Positions 1,415 to 46,120 of a stretch of DNA of 64,000 bases are shown piece by piece. Within the stretch, counting starts at the first letter, position 1, and each line of letters starts with the position of its first letter. The position numbers and the translations under genes were made by a program. Below the pieces are notes generated by a model. That model was given only the letters and a program-made list of their open reading frames with translations. It was not told the DNA's origin and made no database searches. Location of the stretch: sequence record PP885688.1; one strand, 5' to 3'.

Positions 1415-1816
1415 CTACGCTTTCTCCACGTACACCGCACCGGCAGCCTCTGCGACTAAGATATCGCGCAGTAGGTTATCCCAATGAGGAATCATCTCTT
1501 CATTGCAACCAGCAATGCAGCACGGCCCTCCCTCAGCAACCCACGAGGATCCTTCCACGCGGACTGAGCCCGACTGACCCGCACCGCACCATTGGGGCCG
1601 GGGAACTGCCTCGCGTAATAAGTATGACCAGGCAGCGTCGACAGCCTCGATCGGGCTTGGAGCCAGCGGCCCTAAGAACTTACCTTCCATATCCACGGAC
1701 TGAACAAACCACAAGAGATTTTTGTCCCACATCTTGATCACTGCGTTGCCTATGACCAAATTGATCAGCAAGAATTTGTGGCGATAGTCGCGTACTTTTT
1801 TCACATCGTTATTCAT
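1415..1816 (-). CDS. hypothetical protein (133 aa)
   Basis: C-terminal part of track ORF 1415..2392 from ATG MNNDVKK; fills gap between terminator and sbcD. Confidence 0.5.
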   Translation of the reverse strand: MNNDVKKVRDYRHKFLLINLVIGNAVIKMWDKNLLWFVQSVDMEGKFLGPLAPSPIEAVDAAWSYLLREAVPRPQWCGAGQSGSVRVEGSSWVAEGGPCCIAGCNEEMIPHWDNLLRDILVAEAAGAVYVEKA

Positions 1817-1877: not shown

Positions 1878-2516
1878 TTAGTTGCTGGAGGTGAGGGTCT
1901 TGGCGCGGCGGTACGCCATGCCAGCGGCACCGAAGAGACCGGTTCCGAGCAGGACCAGTGAGCCGGGTTCAGGGGTAGGTGCGACCGGCACGCTCTGGCT
2001 GATGAAGTCCTGAGCCTGACCGTTGGTCGACACGTAGTCGGTGAACTGGCTGTAGAAGGCGTTGTTATACTGCCCGCCGTTTTCCGTTGCAACGAATTCC
2101 GCGCCAGACAGATTCGACAATTCACTGGCGGTGAGACCGTCGCTCTCTGCACCGCTAAGGTCGTTGATAGCCCAGATCTCGAGCTGACCGGCGACGTTGC
2201 TGAGCTTGCCAGAGTTGATCTCGCTGACGATGATCGCCGCAGCCTTCTGGTCGGTGGAGGACTTGGTGCTGAGAACTTCGACGTCGGCATTCCACGTCTG
2301 ACCGAAGGACATGCTTCGGGCAAGGTCGAGGCAGTAGCCGTTGAGGGAGGTGCCGTTTGCGGTGATGCCGTACGGACCGACATCTTCCGCACCGTTCGGG
2401 GTTGTACCGCTGTTGGCGCTGACGAGTGACATGCTGGCGACGGAATCTGCGAAGGCAGACACAGGAATGGCGAGTAGTACGAGAGCTAAGGCTGAGATCT
2501 TCAGAAAAGTCTTCAA
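1878..2516 (-). CDS. PEP-CTERM sorting-domain surface protein
   Basis: Signal peptide (LALVLLAIPVSAFA), Ser/Asn-rich body, C-terminal TPEPGSLVLLGTGLFGAAGMAYRRAK; TTG start with GGAG RBS. Confidence 0.9.
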   Translation of the reverse strand: MKTFLKISALALVLLAIPVSAFADSVASMSLVSANSGTTPNGAEDVGPYGITANGTSLNGYCLDLARSMSFGQTWNADVEVLSTKSSTDQKAAAIIVSEINSGKLSNVAGQLEIWAINDLSGAESDGLTASELSNLSGAEFVATENGGQYNNAFYSQFTDYVSTNGQAQDFISQSVPVAPTPEPGSLVLLGTGLFGAAGMAYRRAKTLTSSN

Positions 2517-2594
2517 GAGATACTCCAAGGGTTACGGGTTAGGGTTGAGGTTGCGAGGTTTTGTACCTCGGGTGCTGTCATTGGCACCTAAATT

Positions 2595-2625
2595 CAACCT
2601 ACAAAGCGGCTCCCGCCAAAGATGA
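2595..2625 (-). promoter_or_regulatory. class A promoter motif
   Basis: TCATCTTT-N12-TTTGTAGGTTG upstream of PEP-CTERM gene; one of 10 copies. Confidence 0.7.
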
Positions 2626-2645
2626 CTTTGGCGGGAATATATTTG

Positions 2646-2939
2646 CTAGGCTGTTGTGGCTTCGTACTCGCGCATCAGCTGCTCACCCTGCGAGATCTGG
2701 GACAACAGAACGTCGAAGTTTGATTCGAGTTCGGACTGGGTCTTCTCACGCAGCTTGGAGAGCTCCTCGACGGTGAGGGTGTCGGCATTCTCGATACCGA
2801 GCGCCTTCAGCTGTTCGATCGCGCTGGTGACGCGGGCCTCTTCGACGCGTGAGTCGCCGACGAGTTTATCGCGCTTCGCACCGAGGTCCTTGACTGACTG
2901 CTGGGCCGTTTTGAGTTCCTTCTGAAAATCACGTTCCAT
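2646..2939 (-). CDS. small coiled-coil protein
   Basis: 97 aa, heptad-rich, GGAGG RBS, directly downstream of sbcC-like gene. Confidence 0.7.
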   Translation of the reverse strand: MERDFQKELKTAQQSVKDLGAKRDKLVGDSRVEEARVTSAIEQLKALGIENADTLTVEELSKLREKTQSELESNFDVLLSQISQGEQLMREYEATTA

Positions 2940-2948
2940 GACTACCTC

Positions 2949-4406
2949 CTAGGCTGCTGACTTCGAAATGGGATCGCCGCACTTACCGCAGAGAGTTACG
3001 TTCGCCTGAGCCTTTTTTTGCTCAGTCTTTCGCTGCTCTGCCTGTATCGTTGCGACTGCTTCTTGTGCGGCTGCGAGCTCCGCTTCGAGATCAGAGAGCC
3101 TGTGCTGCGCCAGCTGTTGAGCCTCGCGGCCCTTCACCAGCGCCTCATAACTTCTAATACCCAAGCGGTGACGCTCTACCTGAATTACGTGTGCATTTAT
3201 TTGCGTAGTGATCGCGTCGATCGCCGCAATGCGTGACTTCGTTGGTGAGTTCGAGGAGACCGTGAGCGCCGCCTCGGCTTCAGTGAGAACCTTGCCCCGT
3301 TTGTGCAGGGCGACGATGGCTGTCCAGTTGCCGACTACCAGCTCGATCGCATCGAGAACCTTGCCGTTGCTTGCGACGCGCGTCGAAGCTTCGACCAGCT
3401 GACCGAGATAGGCCGCCTGCCGGTACCGTCGTACCGCCGGAGCCGCATCGGGGACAGTGAGGACCTTCAGGAGGTCGGTCGTACGCTGATGGCGACCCTT
3501 GGCGTGCGCGGCCTGAGAGTAGGCGGCAGCCAGGGCGAAGTCATGGGCAACAGGCTCCGCATCCGGGACTACCAGATTCAGGACAACCTTGCTGATGCGG
3601 GCGTGACGTTCGAGAGCGGCGACGGCGGTCGCATAATTGGCGACCAGCTGAATGGCGACGGCGATCGGCTTGGTCTCAGGGATCACGAGCTGCTTGATGG
3701 TGGACTGAATCTGAGCGAGCCTGCGCCTATGCGCGATCAGGACATCGATCGTCGCGAGGATCTTCTCCTGCGTGCGTACCTGGGGCTCCAGACGATCGAT
3801 GACGGCCTGGACGGCTTCCGCACGATCGGCGAGAGCATCCAGCTTGGAGACGCGCTCCTCGGTTCCACGGGTCTCTTTGGCAAGCATCGTGGCCTGGGTG
3901 TTCTTCTCTCCGATGCGCTTGTTGCCAGCCTTCTTCCCAGCTTCAAGGCGCTCAGTGGACGAGAACGCTCCAAGGATAGAGTTCAGTGGGCCGGGCTTCT
4001 CTTCGATGATGAATTGGCCACCGAACTGGGTAGCGAAGATGGGATCGAGGGTGACGTCACCGATCTGGATGTCGCCCATGTTGAGGTCGAGTACCTCTTT
4101 CGGGATCGAGCCGCCCAGCTTGGCATAGGGTTCGCCCTTATCGACGACGTAGACGATGGATCCCTTGGGACCTTTCTTACGGGTAGCCTCGATAACATGA
4201 CCGTCGATCTCCAGAGTTACCTCCATGAGATCGCTGCCGACACGGACCTGACCGGCGTTGAGCTGGTTGCGCACGATACCCATAAAAGAGCGGAACAGGG
4301 CACTCTTGCCGAGGTTGCTCTCACCTACGACGACCGTGAGGTCCTCGATCGGCAGTTCGAATTCTTCCCAAGACTGAAAGTTCTTGGCGCTGAGTTTTAT
4401 AGCCAC
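2949..4406 (-). CDS. SbcC/Rad50-like protein, N-terminal ATPase half + coiled coil + zinc hook
   Basis: LSAKNFQSW, Walker A GESNLGKS, long coiled coil, terminal CGKCG; no signature/Walker B half. Confidence 0.8.
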   Translation of the reverse strand: MAIKLSAKNFQSWEEFELPIEDLTVVVGESNLGKSALFRSFMGIVRNQLNAGQVRVGSDLMEVTLEIDGHVIEATRKKGPKGSIVYVVDKGEPYAKLGGSIPKEVLDLNMGDIQIGDVTLDPIFATQFGGQFIIEEKPGPLNSILGAFSSTERLEAGKKAGNKRIGEKNTQATMLAKETRGTEERVSKLDALADRAEAVQAVIDRLEPQVRTQEKILATIDVLIAHRRRLAQIQSTIKQLVIPETKPIAVAIQLVANYATAVAALERHARISKVVLNLVVPDAEPVAHDFALAAAYSQAAHAKGRHQRTTDLLKVLTVPDAAPAVRRYRQAAYLGQLVEASTRVASNGKVLDAIELVVGNWTAIVALHKRGKVLTEAEAALTVSSNSPTKSRIAAIDAITTQINAHVIQVERHRLGIRSYEALVKGREAQQLAQHRLSDLEAELAAAQEAVATIQAEQRKTEQKKAQANVTLCGKCGDPISKSAA

Positions 4407-4861: not shown

Positions 4862-4892
4862 CAACCTACAAACCAGCTCGGGCCAAAGATGA
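4862..4892 (-). promoter_or_regulatory. class A promoter motif
   Basis: TCATCTTT-N12-TTTGTAGGTTG. Confidence 0.7.
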
Positions 4893-10483: not shown

Positions 10484-10488
10484 ACATT

Positions 10489-10519
10489 CAACCTACAAGG
10501 CTAGGTCGCTTTGAGATGA
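10489..10519 (-). promoter_or_regulatory. class A promoter motif (variant)
   Basis: TCATCTCA-N12-CTTGTAGGTTG. Confidence 0.6.
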
Positions 10520-17953: not shown

Positions 17954-18039
17954 CAACCTACGGACCCGGAAGCGCCAAAGATGAAAATCTAAAAATCTTT
18001 TTTCAAAGTCATTTTTTGAGGGGTCGACCTTGCAGGTTG
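17954..18039. promoter_or_regulatory. divergent pair of class A promoter motifs
   Basis: Minus copy 17954-17984 (TCATCTTT-N12-TCCGTAGGTTG) and plus copy 18009-18039 (TCATTTTT-N12-CTTGCAGGTTG). Confidence 0.65.
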
Positions 18040-20707: not shown

Positions 20708-23269
20708 CTACGACGCGCGACTCTTCCAGAACGCCTTGCCCGCTTCCGTCTGCGTCTTCGCTGGCTGCAGCTTGATGCCGGTCTGCTGTTCGTAGGTGCG
20801 ATAGAGACCGGTGGCGATTCCACGACGCCGGTAGTTCTCATCGACGTACAGATTCTCTCCCTTGAAGTACTCGTCGTCGAAGGTTGCGCCGTAAGTCTTG
20901 TAGCACTCAACGCGGCCTACTACGTTCGTTGGTTCGAAGCCATCTGGTAGGTCCCTTGCATCGATGCCGAAGACGGACTTGAGGTAGCGTGCCTCGTCCG
21001 GCATGTTCGCAGCCTTGTCGAGGGCGAGCACGACGGCGGTCTCGTCAACGTTGACGATGTAGAAGGTGATGCCTGGTGCGGTGCCAGCTGCGGTCTTTCC
21101 TAAGCCAGCCGCAACCTCACGCGACAATTCGATTAGCTTGTTCAGCTTCACGCCCTTCGCGTTGCGGGCTGAGACCGAGACAGGAAGGTATCCTCTGCCT
21201 GTCTGTAGCGCGGCGGCATACCGATGGTGGCCATCGATCAGCGTTACTACGGGTTGCGTGTCGTCGTTCTTTCGACCGAAGCGGAATGCCGTCACATCGA
21301 CAGGTTCGGAGTAGTCCATGTTGTGAGCTACGTCGTCGCTGACAATCTGAACCTCTGGCCGGAAGTCCATCTCCTGCCGTTCAATCGCCGACAGTGGCAG
21401 GTAGTGGATCGCTGGGATAGGTCCGTTGTACTTCTCCTCCGGCTTGTACTTCTGCCCATCATCTGCCGTAGCTGCCGCCGAGCGCGACAAACTCGTCACG
21501 GTCGGGACATACTCGGTCGTCAACAGCTTGAGACGGTTGGGAGCAATCCTCTGCTTGCATACGTACCAGGGCGTACCCCAATCTTCGTCGCGGAACTGAT
21601 ACCCGCCCTCGTCCGGCTGAATATCCAAGCCCTTGACGTTCACTTCCCAGTGATCGAAGTGCTCGGGCTCTGCCGCCTCACCGCTATTAGGATTTGTAGC
21701 GAGGTACACGCCCTTGCGACTGTACTTCGCAGGGTTGAGTCCGTTCTTCAAGATCTCGTCGCGGTAGTAAGGACTAATGCTGTGGTAGAGGATGTCGGGG
21801 TGAGAAACCGCAGCCGTCTTGCGAAGCGTGTTGACTTCGTCCTGGGGATCGAAGCGACGGATGACGCCGGGCCCGCCAAGCACGATGATCTCGTCGTTCT
21901 CACGGTGAACTGATCGCACACGCACAACCGGGGCAGGGAACGCGAGCAGATCGCCAGCCTTCAGATCCTCAGCCTTCATCCAGCTACCAGTCTTGGCGCT
22001 GGCGGCCTTCTGCTGTTGGTGTACCGGGATCTCTTCGCATATAGAGAGGACATCTTTCCCCTCAACGTTCGCCGCGTCTTCTTTCTTGAAGCGCCAGGCC
22101 GTCGTTGGATAGATGGCACCGAGGTGGGCGAGGTGAGCGCCGTGGTCAAGCATCCACTTCACGACTGCGGGCGATAGGAGCTTCTGGACCTTCTTACCGA
22201 CTGCAGCTTGTCCGTCGATGAAGTGATCCATGATTTTCTGGCGCTGCTTATCCGTCATGACGCGCGACGCGGCCCAGCGAAGTTCATTGCGAACCGTCTC
22301 CGGTGTGCCTGGCTGGTTGATCGGGGAGCTCATCGCCCACTGGATCGCCCGATTGAGGGAGTCAGCCTCTCCAGCCCAGCGCAGAGGTGACTTCTCCTTC
22401 GTAATCTCGCGGTGACGCTTCTCCGCCTTATCCATGCTGAGTAGGTGGCTGATGAATTCACCGATCGAATCTTCATCCGGAACTGCATCCCCGGTGAGGT
22501 CGGCTCCACGCATCTCGAAGATGTAACCGTAGGGTTCGGAACCCTGAACGAACTTCTTGGTCTCCTCGCCGTGGTTGAACATGGATCCGCCGAGCGCGTA
22601 TACGGCGGCGTAGGCAACGTCGTGGCTGACGTAGACCCGGCCCTGAGCTGGTGCCAGCTGAGCGCGGCTCTTGGCTTTGGCGGGCATAGATATTTCGCGA
22701 GGCTGGATGCCAGAGGTGAGGATGGCTTGGGCGGCGGCTTCGGTGGGAGTGCCGTGGAAGTAGGGCCGGTCTGCGGCCTCCGCGTGAAGGGGAGCTGCGG
22801 TCTTGGACAGATTCTGTAGCGCCGCCGGTATGCCTTGACCAGCGGGAAGGCGGGAGAAGCTGGTGCCGTTACCTACACGCTTCTCCCAGGTCTGCGGGTC
22901 TCCATATAGCTTCGTGATGAGTGCGGTATCTGAGAGTGGGATCCGGCCCGGGGTTCCCATGTAGTCGGCTGCCCAGGGATCCACGATGAAGTTGTCGATG
23001 ATCGCGAAGTCGTGGCCACCCTCACCGGCTCCGTCTGCGAGTTCTGCGGTCGGGTTGTCCTTCTTCTGGTAGCCGAAGATCTCGCCGTGGCCGATCTGCT
23101 TGATGACGTTCTCCGCCGCCATGGTGCAGTTTCCCCACGGGTTGCCGGTCTCCTCGATCGCGCCGGTCTCGAAGGCGTCGTCAACATCCTTCATCATCTG
23201 GGCCAGGATCGCGTCGATCTGGTCGGGGAGAGAGCTGGCGCGGCGGGTTAGGAGCTTTGAACGGGACAT
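20708..23269 (-). CDS. polyvalent protein: transglutaminase-like + two ART-like + ParB-like + GNAT domains
   Basis: GNC..H..VDP triad; YFHGT..VYVS..PDEDS; LYHS..GVYLA; LIDGHHRYAAA; NYRRRGIATGLY. Confidence 0.7.
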   Translation of the reverse strand: MSRSKLLTRRASSLPDQIDAILAQMMKDVDDAFETGAIEETGNPWGNCTMAAENVIKQIGHGEIFGYQKKDNPTAELADGAGEGGHDFAIIDNFIVDPWAADYMGTPGRIPLSDTALITKLYGDPQTWEKRVGNGTSFSRLPAGQGIPAALQNLSKTAAPLHAEAADRPYFHGTPTEAAAQAILTSGIQPREISMPAKAKSRAQLAPAQGRVYVSHDVAYAAVYALGGSMFNHGEETKKFVQGSEPYGYIFEMRGADLTGDAVPDEDSIGEFISHLLSMDKAEKRHREITKEKSPLRWAGEADSLNRAIQWAMSSPINQPGTPETVRNELRWAASRVMTDKQRQKIMDHFIDGQAAVGKKVQKLLSPAVVKWMLDHGAHLAHLGAIYPTTAWRFKKEDAANVEGKDVLSICEEIPVHQQQKAASAKTGSWMKAEDLKAGDLLAFPAPVVRVRSVHRENDEIIVLGGPGVIRRFDPQDEVNTLRKTAAVSHPDILYHSISPYYRDEILKNGLNPAKYSRKGVYLATNPNSGEAAEPEHFDHWEVNVKGLDIQPDEGGYQFRDEDWGTPWYVCKQRIAPNRLKLLTTEYVPTVTSLSRSAAATADDGQKYKPEEKYNGPIPAIHYLPLSAIERQEMDFRPEVQIVSDDVAHNMDYSEPVDVTAFRFGRKNDDTQPVVTLIDGHHRYAAALQTGRGYLPVSVSARNAKGVKLNKLIELSREVAAGLGKTAAGTAPGITFYIVNVDETAVVLALDKAANMPDEARYLKSVFGIDARDLPDGFEPTNVVGRVECYKTYGATFDDEYFKGENLYVDENYRRRGIATGLYRTYEQQTGIKLQPAKTQTEAGKAFWKSRAS

Positions 23270-30245: not shown

Positions 30246-30332
30246 GCGTATTATCTCCCAGGTCTTTTGAAAAAGCTTCCCTTTTCTGCAACCTACAAAC
30301 CTGGGGGGCCCAAAGATGAATATCGGTAGAAA

Positions 30333-43248: not shown

Positions 43249-43336
43249 CTAATACCCATCGCGAGGGGCTGAGGGCGAATATTAAAAAATTTCCCCACTT
43301 CAAATTCATCTTTGGGTCGATCTGGTTTGCAGGTTG
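43249..43336. promoter_or_regulatory. divergent control region: class B (minus) and class A (plus)
   Basis: ATATTC-N20-GGTATTAG on minus; TCATCTTT-N12-TTTGCAGGTTG at 43306-43336 on plus. Confidence 0.7.
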
Positions 43337-43341
43337 TAGAT

Positions 43342-43599
43342 ATGTCCGTCATCAAATGCACCCAGTGCCACCAGCTAGTCGACCGAGAGAATGATTCTCA
43401 CGTTGTAATTCCGAACACCGAGCACGTCGGCTACAAGCGCCACCGCCCGACCAAGTTCGTTCACGCCTCCTGCTTCGAGAAGCTCGTCATCTTCAATCAC
43501 GAGATCCGTGTTCGTGACGACGCGAAACGCGACGCCCAGCTCGCGGAGGTCATGAAGAAACTCGAAGCGAAGCAGCTGGAGAAGGCAGGTCAGGAGTGA
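43342..43599 (+). CDS. small Zn-binding hypothetical protein
   Basis: CTQC..HASC. Confidence 0.6.
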   Translation: MSVIKCTQCHQLVDRENDSHVVIPNTEHVGYKRHRPTKFVHASCFEKLVIFNHEIRVRDDAKRDAQLAEVMKKLEAKQLEKAGQE

Positions 43600-44684
43600 A
43601 CATCTCCCGACCCTCCACCCGCTACCTTGAACTCGACTCCCTTCGCGGCCTGGCCGCGATGATCGTTGTCTACCACCACTTCAGAAACATGTTCTTCTCC
43701 CAGACCGACCCCAGCAGCTTCCTACAAAACGTGCTGCTGCATCCCTTGGCTTCTGGCTTCGAGTCAGTGCGGCTGTTCTTCGTGCTAAGCGGATTTGTGC
43801 TGGCGCTCCCCTACCTATCGGGGCGGCAGAAGCCCTACCCCAAGTTCGTCCTGGGCCGCGTCGCCCGGATCTACGGCCCTTACCTGTTTGCCCTTGCCCT
43901 CGCAGTCGGCGGCGCTCTGATATGGCACGGTCAACTCACCGCCTTCGATTGGGCTCGGGGCTGCTGGAATAACCCTGTGTCGTGGAAGCTTGTGCTTCAG
44001 CACATCCTGTTTCTAGGTAACTACGATCACGCGGAGTACAACGTCGCGTTCTGGTCTCTGATCGTCGAGATGAAGGTCTCCCTCATCTTCCCGCTGCTCG
44101 TTCTATTCGTGCGCTACACCCGCGTGAGCGTTCAAGCCGCGACCGTGCTCGTCCTTGTGATTGTGTCTCAGAGACTTATGCACCCGATCCTTCATCCAGA
44201 GGACCTCAGCGCCTTCCTGATCGGCGTTATGCTGGCCAAATATCGTGGGCAGATCCAAATGCTCTGGCTGCGGAGCAGACTATGGGCGCGGGCAAGCTTC
44301 ATGCTCGCATCGCTAATCGCCTTCTTCTGCAACCTTCACCCGATCGGGTTCATGTGGCACATCGGGGCGCTCCCGATCATCCTCGGTGCTGCCGGAATCA
44401 TCGTCTTTTCCTTGAACTCCACCCGAGTACAGGGCCTGTTGAAGATGCGTGTGCCGGTCTTTCTCGGCAAGATCTCCTTCAGCCTCTACCTCGTCCACAA
44501 CACTGTGCTCTTCGCGCTCACAGCGGTCCTGCAGGGGAAACATCCTTACTTCTTCCTCCCTATCTACCTGACTGCCGCAATCGCGCTGGCCTACCTCTTC
44601 TATCTCGCGATCGAGAAGCCGTTCACTGAGCTCAGCAAGTGGGTGAGTTCGGTACGTCGGGTTGCCGTGGAGGTGGCCGCCTAA
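43596..44684 (+). CDS. acyltransferase family 3 (OafA/YrhL-like O-acyltransferase)
   Basis: LDSLRGLAA..YHH, V.LFFVLSGFVL, FWSLIVE, LGKISFSLYLVH, IEKP; multi-TM. Confidence 0.9.
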   Translation: MNISRPSTRYLELDSLRGLAAMIVVYHHFRNMFFSQTDPSSFLQNVLLHPLASGFESVRLFFVLSGFVLALPYLSGRQKPYPKFVLGRVARIYGPYLFALALAVGGALIWHGQLTAFDWARGCWNNPVSWKLVLQHILFLGNYDHAEYNVAFWSLIVEMKVSLIFPLLVLFVRYTRVSVQAATVLVLVIVSQRLMHPILHPEDLSAFLIGVMLAKYRGQIQMLWLRSRLWARASFMLASLIAFFCNLHPIGFMWHIGALPIILGAAGIIVFSLNSTRVQGLLKMRVPVFLGKISFSLYLVHNTVLFALTAVLQGKHPYFFLPIYLTAAIALAYLFYLAIEKPFTELSKWVSSVRRVAVEVAA

Positions 44685-44700
44685 AAATCTCTCACCAAAG

Positions 44701-44731
44701 TCATCTTTGAACGTTTTCGGTTTGTAGGTTG
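44701..44731 (+). promoter_or_regulatory. class A promoter motif
   Basis: TCATCTTT-N12-TTTGTAGGTTG. Confidence 0.7.
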
Positions 44732-45022: not shown

Positions 45023-45053
45023 TCATCTTTAGTCGATTTCACTTTGTAGGTTG
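45023..45053 (+). promoter_or_regulatory. class A promoter motif
   Basis: TCATCTTT-N12-TTTGTAGGTTG; next 12 nt identical to the 44701 copy. Confidence 0.7.
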
Positions 45054-46089: not shown

Positions 46090-46120
46090 TCATCTTTGGG
46101 TCATCGAGGTTTGTAGGTTG
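46090..46120 (+). promoter_or_regulatory. class A promoter motif
   Basis: TCATCTTT-N12-TTTGTAGGTTG. Confidence 0.7.

Follow-up and report, generated by a model that had tools for sequence, protein, structure and literature searches.

A jumbo phage of Arctic tundra Acidobacteriaceae carries a predicted exosortase-sorted, thioester-domain-like surface protein in a putative moron-type cassette

Phage morons and surface-protein conversion genes include bor and lom of lambda, sieA of P22 and the phage O-antigen acetyltransferases. Bacteria of soil and wastewater have PEP-CTERM proteins in great number, yet hardly any of these has a known molecular activity. Thioester domains (TEDs) were reported in 2015 'exclusively in Gram-positive bacteria' (PMC4450167) and were still described as Gram-positive in 2026 (PMC13685950); one TED adhesin, TIEpLS20 of the conjugative plasmid pLS20, is needed for mating in liquid medium (PMC8092201). 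Searches of the full-text literature turned up no tailed phage with a reported PEP-CTERM protein; the sole virus-related mention of PEP-CTERM was that of a Dehalococcoides integrative element. The subject here is gp179 of Tunturiibacter phage Tunturi_5, annotated in GenBank (XOB77622.1) as 'hypothetical protein'. The phage is a jumbo myovirus whose genome of 308,711 base pairs (bp) was assembled as a circle, and it was isolated from Arctic tundra soil on Tunturiibacter psychrotolerans X4BP1, a member of the Acidobacteriaceae (PMC11924767). The Tunturi_5 genome paper mentions neither PEP-CTERM nor exosortase (PMC11924767). The stretch of DNA analysed, referred to below as the window, comprises 64,000 nucleotides, bases 124001-188000 of record PP885688.1, and all phage coordinates are those of the window (record coordinate minus 124000) unless the record itself is named; the first 12 kb of the window are 100% identical to the record.

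The best overall explanation of the locus, to which we assign a probability of roughly 0.6, is that gp179 and its flanking signals form a moron-type cassette (a promoter-like motif, one gene and a hairpin) that has long been carried by a lineage of Tunturi_5-like jumbo phages, and that the product is an exosortase-sorted, TED-like surface protein. The gene and the parts of its product are placed as follows.

1878..2516, minus strand: gp179 coding sequence, 212 amino acids and stop codon, with Sec signal peptide, TED-like domain and PEP-CTERM tail
2448..2516, minus strand: signal peptide, residues 1-23, read from the translation, with A-F-A before D24 as the putative cleavage site
1989..2447, minus strand: mature domain, approximately residues 24-176, with a TED fold predicted by AlphaFold2 and Foldseek
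2331-2333, 2172-2186 and 2010-2012, minus strand: key codons for Cys62, Gln111/Trp115 and Gln169, respectively
1881..1979, minus strand: PEP-CTERM sorting signal, residues 180-212, above the PF07589 and TIGR02595 cut-offs

The open reading frame (ORF) was confirmed as gp179. Its start codon is TTG, with GGAG 6 bases upstream (2523-2526), and the mechanical ORF around it is longer than the annotated gene, reaching 2528. The initial annotation had described the product as a complete exosortase substrate, and the signal peptide, TPEP motif, transmembrane helix and basic tail that make up this description are all present. The signal peptide, read from the sequence with no dedicated predictor, displays basic residues, a hydrophobic core and A-x-A before D24; the alanine at -1 (position 23) is found in 98 of 100 relatives, and a helix was modelled at residues 2-15. 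At the other end of the protein, T-P-E-P (residues 181-184) is followed by a hydrophobic helix (185-201), by R203-R204 and then by eight residues. In the same 100 relatives P182 is kept in 99, E183 in 100 and P184 in 99. Searches with the PEP-CTERM models gave 24.3 bits for PF07589 (cut-off 20.7) and 19.2 bits for TIGR02595 (curated cut-off 16), the latter being the check originally proposed for this protein, and Pfam and NCBIfam recognised the sorting tail only.

No exosortase was found in the window, as had been stated at the outset, nor in the rest of the phage when all ORFs of Tunturi_5 were screened for multi-pass membrane proteins, the sole candidates being gp227 and gp204. The five-helix membrane protein gp204 was considered as a divergent exosortase and rejected, being without family support. 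The other candidate, gp227 (43596-44684, plus strand), is an eight-helix O-acetyltransferase of the Acyl_transf_3 family (E 8e-36), encoded in a short operon behind a copy of the motif described below (43306-43336). Enzymes of this family acetylate surface polysaccharides, so that gp227 too hints at changes made by the phage to the cell surface.

A second protein of Tunturi_5 with the same kind of tail lies outside the window. The product of gp97 (PP885688.1 75107-75703, minus strand), a 'hypothetical' protein of 198 amino acids, has a signal peptide and a PEP-CTERM tail that scores 26.4 bits with PF07589. Its body is unrelated to that of gp179 and holds two conserved cysteines, and only two homologues of it were found, a full-length one on the phage-like contig L106, which keeps the tail, and the shorter P0171. 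Tunturi_5 thus encodes two independent PEP-CTERM substrates, which argues that the phage really uses the exosortase pathway of its host. Among the bacterial relatives of gp179, genes for fusions of an exosortase with CPBP (an Rce1-like protease) are found 1-4 kilobases (kb) downstream of full-length family members in three Acidobacteriaceae loci.

L018 7743-9413: exosortase-CPBP fusion gene, TIGR04162 match of 202 bits (cut-off 150)
L009 10792-12585: exosortase-CPBP fusion gene, TIGR04162 match of 158 bits
L025 5686-6975: exosortase-CPBP fusion gene, cut by the contig end

The fusion enzyme and the TED-like PEP-CTERM protein may constitute a dedicated pair of sorting enzyme and substrate.

The body between the two sorting signals had been overlooked by the initial annotation, as had gp97 and the phage-derived look of the closest bacterial copies considered below. 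AlphaFold2, given an alignment of 100 sequences, modelled gp179 with a predicted local distance difference test score (pLDDT) of 90.7. When the model was compared with the PDB by Foldseek, matches 1 to 25 were all TEDs, from at least five proteins, with E values from 5.6e-5 to 3e-2. The best was CpTIE of C. perfringens (5a0g; E 5.6e-5), with a template modelling (TM) score normalised by target of 0.50-0.53, and the others included both TEDs of S. pyogenes Cpa, SfbI and a TIE protein of B. anthracis. The viral structure library BFVD held no match (best E 0.15).

Three motifs have been defined for TEDs, namely [YFL]C-hydrophobic-hydrophilic, TQxx-hydrophobic-W and hydrophobic-Q-hydrophilic-hydrophobic-hydrophobic; the first supplies the bond-forming cysteine, on a beta strand, the second lies in a helix, and the third supplies the bond-forming glutamine, in a beta context towards the C-terminus (PMC6194298, PMC4450167). 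All three are present in gp179, in order and in the corresponding predicted secondary-structure context. The cysteine motif is Y61-C62-L63-D64, at the end of a predicted strand (56-62); the helix motif is G110-Q111-L-E-I-W115, in a predicted helix (107-118), the T position being variable among relatives and G in gp179; and the glutamine motif is A168-Q169-D170-F171-I172, near the C-terminus of the domain, with a predicted strand at 171-173. In the 100 relatives C62 and W115 are kept in all, Q169 in 99 and Q111 in 92. Exactly one cysteine follows residue 25 in 221 of the 272 full-length relatives collected, and 208 of the 272 display the strict ordered pattern of all motifs plus PEP. All phage-borne copies of at least 34% identity keep the TED motifs.

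The signals flanking the gene, together with the copies of the upstream motif in the window, are given below.

2595..2625, minus strand: promoter-like motif of two boxes, upstream and downstream, set 12 bases apart and found about 31 times in the genome
2517..2594, minus strand: putative 5' leader of gp179, 78 bases between the two-box motif and the TTG, containing GGAG at 2523-2526
2610..2637, without assigned strand: stable inverted repeat overlapping the upstream box and following gp180, 12 pairs folded, 4-base loop
1856..1871, minus strand: GC-rich, terminator-like hairpin with GCAA loop directly after the stop codon, 8 bp, -16.4 kcal/mol, z -3.8
4862-4892, 10486-10516, 17954-17984, 18009-18039 and 30289-30319: copies of the two-box motif
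43306-43336, 44701-44731, 45023-45053 and 46090-46120: further copies of the two-box motif

The boxes upstream of gp179 read TCATCTTTG, 12 bases and TTGTAGGTTG (a 9-mer and a 10-mer). Reading of the Tunturi_5 genome in eight pieces gave about 31 copies at this same spacing, about 21 of them elsewhere in PP885688.1 than in the window; three weak matches inside genes aside, every copy lies between genes and faces the gene that follows. In the window the 13-mer core was found 8 times against 0.48 expected, and there were zero matches of the motif in 897 kb of Acidobacteriaceae chromosomal loci. A sigma-70 scan found no promoter for gp179 and did not detect the two-box motif. Being absent from host-family DNA and unseen by the sigma-70 scan, the motif is thus, on sequence grounds, not simply a host consensus; Tunturi_5 itself encodes two sigma factors, gp3 and gp211. 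The motif also lies upstream of the 77%-identical gp179 homologue in contigs L092/L093. No gene annotated as virion structural is directly preceded by a copy. The element had been taken for a class A, putatively early promoter, of which the repeated, phage-specific element is real; the 'early' timing is conjectural, and the motif is a putative promoter of gp179. It offers a genome-wide marker for what would be one promoter class of Tunturi_5.

In the other copies the gap between motif and start codon is mostly 5-25 bases, so that the 78 bases of gp179 are unusually long. An ATG is found exactly 5 bases past the motif in 7 of 25 strict matches (about a quarter to a third of copies), as would fit transcripts that begin with the A of the ATG itself, and these copies would thus give rise to leaderless messenger RNAs; other copies precede a short leader with a GAGG-type ribosome-binding site. 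The 3' part of the gp179 leader is conserved among relatives, and the leader had no real match to an Rfam family. The inverted repeat at the upstream box folds at -20.8 kcal/mol (z -5.5), the terminator-like scan having called it at 2611-2636 with 11 pairs. Its inner repeat (6+4+6 bases) is the partly palindromic upstream box, common to other motif copies. The inverted repeat is kept in L092/L093 with wobble pairs, and its extended stem of 12 pairs could also end the transcripts of gp180.

The downstream hairpin, which had been recorded early on, proved stable and conserved. It occurs once in the window and is found, identical or with 1-2 mismatches, 3' of the gene in L092, L093, L094, L004 and L104 and in the bacterial contigs L005 and L006, that is, in every close relative with a readable 3' flank, including the phage in which the gene is relocated. 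The hairpin thus belongs to the gp179 cassette and travels with the gene.

The behaviour of the gene was also followed among relatives of Tunturi_5. Homologues of gp179 at 77% and 53% identity occupy the same site on independent contigs of the Joint Genome Institute (JGI; L092-L094), representing two metagenomic lineages, and the syntenic contigs share the order of an AAA_15 protein of 485-486 amino acids, a 97-residue protein, the PEP-CTERM gene and SbcD. In the metagenome contig L105 a gap of 19 bases, empty of genes, separates the gp180-like from the SbcD-like gene. In L004 the gene (56% identity) is at another site; this 45-kb contig has portal, methyltransferase and further genes in common with Tunturi_5. 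The proposal that gp179 was inserted between its neighbours is thus supported by one relative in which the flanking genes abut and another which carries the gene elsewhere. An SbcD-based search of viral contigs found no further syntenic relatives, and the metagenome search found one. Presence, absence and relocation among relatives thus give the pattern of a moron-type cassette.

Against its closest phage copy gp179 has a ratio of non-synonymous to synonymous substitution rates (dN/dS) of 0.28 at a dS of 0.59 (Nei-Gojobori), and all copies are intact. Its GC content (59.2%) and GC content at third codon positions (GC3, 74%) match those of its neighbours. An assembly chimera with host DNA, which had been named beforehand as fatal to the proposal, is excluded by the isolate genome, by the same site in independent contigs, by the neighbour-like GC and GC3 and by the dN/dS.

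Searched against 1.84 billion proteins, a profile made from the first 11 sequences retrieved 433 cluster representatives at E<1e-10. Almost all of these have 200-250 amino acids, and the named members are called only PEP-CTERM or hypothetical proteins. In species-representative genomes full-length relatives belong to Acidobacteriaceae and related Terriglobia, in genera that include Granulicella, Edaphobacter, Terracidiphilus, Acidipila and Candidatus Sulfotelmatobacter, and also in Tunturiibacter gelidiferens. A Janthinobacterium match (P0020) was rejected as a relative, covering the tail only and lacking the motifs. In IMG/VR seven contigs carry a relative of gp179, some of them together with a terminase 46% identical to that of Tunturi_5 or with a related major head protein, and another copy has Acb2/Tad1 and T4-type RNA ligase domains encoded alongside it on a phage-like contig of 13.8 kb. 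A second phage-like lineage has a transfer RNA (tRNA) gene within about 25 bases after the family member (L103 3874-3945 and L086 807-879); ARAGORN called one of the two as of undetermined type and the other as tRNA-Ile.

In a neighbour-joining tree (200 bootstraps), a comparison of the kind suggested in the initial annotation, here with bacterial copies, the copies of Tunturi_5-like phages form a clade of their own (86%), and those of Granulicella, Edaphobacter and Tunturiibacter a separate one (91%). The phage clade is nested in a 100% clade that includes four copies on long bacterial contigs (L002, L003, L005 and L006). Directly upstream of each of these four is sequence resembling the 3' end of a gp180-like gene, detected in L005 also by tblastn and in the other three by reading the translated upstream sequence. 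One of the four also has a short gp181-like stretch upstream and transposase genes nearby, and the phage hairpin is retained in two of the four. About 6-10 kb of flanking sequence in each direction yielded no further genes like those of Tunturi_5. The simplest reading of these four loci is that phage fragments were left in chromosomes, in which the adhesin gene alone stayed intact, and the closest bacterial copies thus look phage-derived rather than the source of the phage gene. Such survival of this gene alone would suggest a use for the cell, of the kind that conversion genes have.

What gp179 would do can be envisaged from these parts. The protein would be exported by Sec and retained in the inner membrane by its C-terminal helix, until the host exosortase cuts it and passes it to the cell surface or the exopolysaccharide (EPS) layer. 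The part displayed would be a minimal, stalk-less thioester domain of about 150 amino acids, in which Cys62 and Gln169 would form an internal thioester; attack on this bond by an amine of the target would leave a covalent isopeptide link, as in the TED adhesins of Gram-positive bacteria, with PEP-CTERM and exosortase in place of LPXTG and sortase. The infected or carrier cell would gain a covalently reactive surface protein, the most likely uses of which would be to stick the cell to its neighbours or to the soil or EPS matrix, favouring local spread or fitness in the carrier state, or to modify or mask a surface receptor covalently. Titration of the exosortase, also proposed in the initial annotation, is neither favoured nor contradicted by the results. 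The steps from transcription at the two-box motif through Sec export and sorting to the thioester, its target and any gain for the phage are what we infer; the anatomy of the sequence, the family, the predicted fold, the conservation, the pattern of presence and absence and the exosortase genes near bacterial relatives are what was observed.

Several results weigh against the proposal of an exosortase-sorted, TED-like surface protein in a moron-type cassette. Normalised by query the TM scores are 0.38-0.46, a moderate structural match. gp179 did not match the Pfam TED family PF08341, and of its 100 relatives 2 did so weakly (E 0.006); the family profile retrieved nothing from the PDB sequences, even at E 10; and hhalign gave a probability of 0.3% against a single annotated TED, that of pLS20, and of 5.7% against a 10-sequence profile of plasmid TEDs (the thioester-domain gene of pLS20 and nine plasmid relatives from non-pathogenic species). 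The hairpin after the gene has no U-tract, and the promoter function of the two-box motif is putative. In both hhalign comparisons the best local alignment pairs the cysteine motifs. Since no significant sequence-profile match to TEDs was obtained, the modelled body is called TED-like, by fold and motifs, and not a member of the Pfam TED family. We regard homology of the predicted fold to TEDs as quite probable, and a real thioester in gp179 as likely, with somewhat less assurance. A broader proposal is more tentative, falling a little short of even odds: that the diderm Acidobacteriaceae have a large, unannotated family of thioester 'harpoon' proteins of one domain each, sorted by exosortase and PEP-CTERM instead of the sortase and LPXTG of Gram-positive TED adhesins, and that jumbo and other soil phages have acquired the gene repeatedly, express it from their own promoters, which would make the infected cell covalently sticky or masked, and have returned it to bacterial chromosomes as a stand-alone cassette.

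The same sequence-profile results would suit an exosortase-sorted surface protein similar to TEDs in fold only, which would act non-covalently, for example in receptor masking or superinfection exclusion, the roles suggested in the initial annotation. The evidence for the PEP-CTERM tail and the signal peptide is independent of the TED reading, and gp227 and the glycosyltransferases of the phage (PMC11924767), as other surface-modifying genes, fit with receptor remodelling. The key residues, however, sit within the published contexts of the TED motifs, a single, unpaired and invariant cysteine in an exported protein is hard to explain otherwise, and the top 25 structural matches are all TEDs; a protein of this kind without thioester chemistry is therefore considered unlikely. 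Alternatively, the tail could be an unprocessed anchor, tethering to the inner membrane a protein that would serve exclusion from within the periplasm, for example through amines of peptidoglycan or the machinery by which other phages enter. Such a role would agree with the failure to find an exosortase in the phage, and the exosortases beside bacterial relatives belong to TIGR04162, a fusion type for which the substrates named have another tail motif. Yet P-E-P is kept in 99-100% of relatives, all phage copies included, which argues for recognition by a sorting enzyme over mere anchoring, the tail recurs in a second phage protein, and the host genus encodes family members with this tail, so that a periplasmic anchor is less probable still. 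Finally, gp179 might be a passenger with no role for the phage, whether captured recently from the host, joined to the phage by chimeric assembly or hitch-hiking in decay. Most of the family, with its 433 cluster representatives, is bacterial, and the gene lies among DNA-recombination genes to which it has no functional link. This explanation is scarcely credible, being already contradicted by the isolate genome and the shared site at 77% and 53% identity, by the dN/dS and intact copies, by a composition like that of the neighbours, by the phage-type promoter motif in front of the gene and by the 86% phage clade apart from that of Granulicella, Edaphobacter and Tunturiibacter.

The genes around gp179 follow the order gp181 (with an AAA_15/AAA_23 N-terminus, annotated as exonuclease), gp180, gp179, gp178 and gp177 (Metallophos, SbcD-like). 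The initial placement of gp179 between an sbcC-like gene and sbcD holds in general, and direct adjacency does not, two small genes, gp180 and gp178, lying between. Those neighbours with observations of their own, and one gene elsewhere in the window, are as follows.

2949-4406, minus strand: gp181, SbcC/Rad50-like, with family matches only at the P-loop N-terminus (residues 4-46) and C-x-x-C at its end
2646-2939, minus strand: gp180, a separate protein of 97 amino acids after gp181, probably coiled-coil
1415-1816, minus strand: gp178, 133 amino acids, between gp179 and SbcD, GC 53.5% and GC3 61%, below its neighbours
20708-23269, minus strand: gp205, 853 amino acids, an ADP-ribosyltransferase (ART) exoenzyme-type toxin according to the record and PMC11924767

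No C-terminal ATPase half of a Rad50-like gene was recognised near gp181 and gp180, and the Rad50-like gene gp181 may therefore be split or unusually organised. gp178 had no family matches; it is absent from the syntenic relatives L093 and L094, in which SbcD directly follows the gp179 homologue, and it looks like a later insertion. As for gp205, the related contig L004 also encodes a protein with an ART-PolyVal domain.

If true, the thioester would give one PEP-CTERM family a concrete chemistry, that of covalent attachment to an amine-bearing target, and would extend thioester adhesins beyond Gram-positive bacteria, in company with a second, unrelated sorting system. gp179 would also be an example of a virus that relies on a protein-sorting enzyme of its host to decorate the infected cell, and one known from an isolated pair of phage and host in Acidobacteriota, a phylum dominant in soil and yet little studied.

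Compared with the described systems, gp179 resembles the phage morons in standing alone between genes that abut in a relative, flanked by promoter-like and terminator-like signals of its own, and in having a product predicted to reach the envelope; it differs from them in protein family and sorting route, and Tunturi_5 is not known to be temperate. With PEP-CTERM substrates (TIGR02595, PF07589) it shares the signal peptide, P-E-P, hydrophobic helix and basic cluster, and its relatives lie near exosortase genes, the difference being that gp179 belongs to a jumbo phage of lytic appearance in which no exosortase was found. The flocculation protein PepA (NF033554) is likewise a small PEP-CTERM protein of similar length, and 53 of the 100 relatives match it weakly, some of them beyond the tail. 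Its cut-off, however, is 80 bits, and the best relative reached E 2.3e-11, with a top score of about 35 bits among ten members examined; gp179 itself scored 17.2 bits, and membership of the PepA family was rejected.

As with TIEpLS20, the carrier cell would owe a thioester adhesin to a mobile element, and the cysteine motifs of the two were paired by hhalign. TIEpLS20 differs in being a Class II TED with a long stalk (767 amino acids in the RefSeq record), borne by a Gram-positive plasmid and with a demonstrated role in mating, and its similarity to gp179 is not significant (E 0.2). The Class I TEDs (CpTIE, 5a0g; Cpa, 4c0z and 2xid; SfbI, 5a0l) have in common with gp179 the predicted beta-barrel with helices, the three motifs in order, the near-invariant cysteine and glutamine and a domain N-terminal to a C-terminal sorting signal. 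In contrast to their LPXTG/sortase tail, gp179 has a PEP-CTERM/exosortase tail, a single domain and no isopeptide stalk, with no significant sequence-profile match to them, and its family is that of Acidobacteriaceae and their phages. Thus while each part has its counterpart among these systems, a TED adhesin and an exosortase substrate combined in one phage-borne protein would, as judged from the sequence and the predicted structure, be new.

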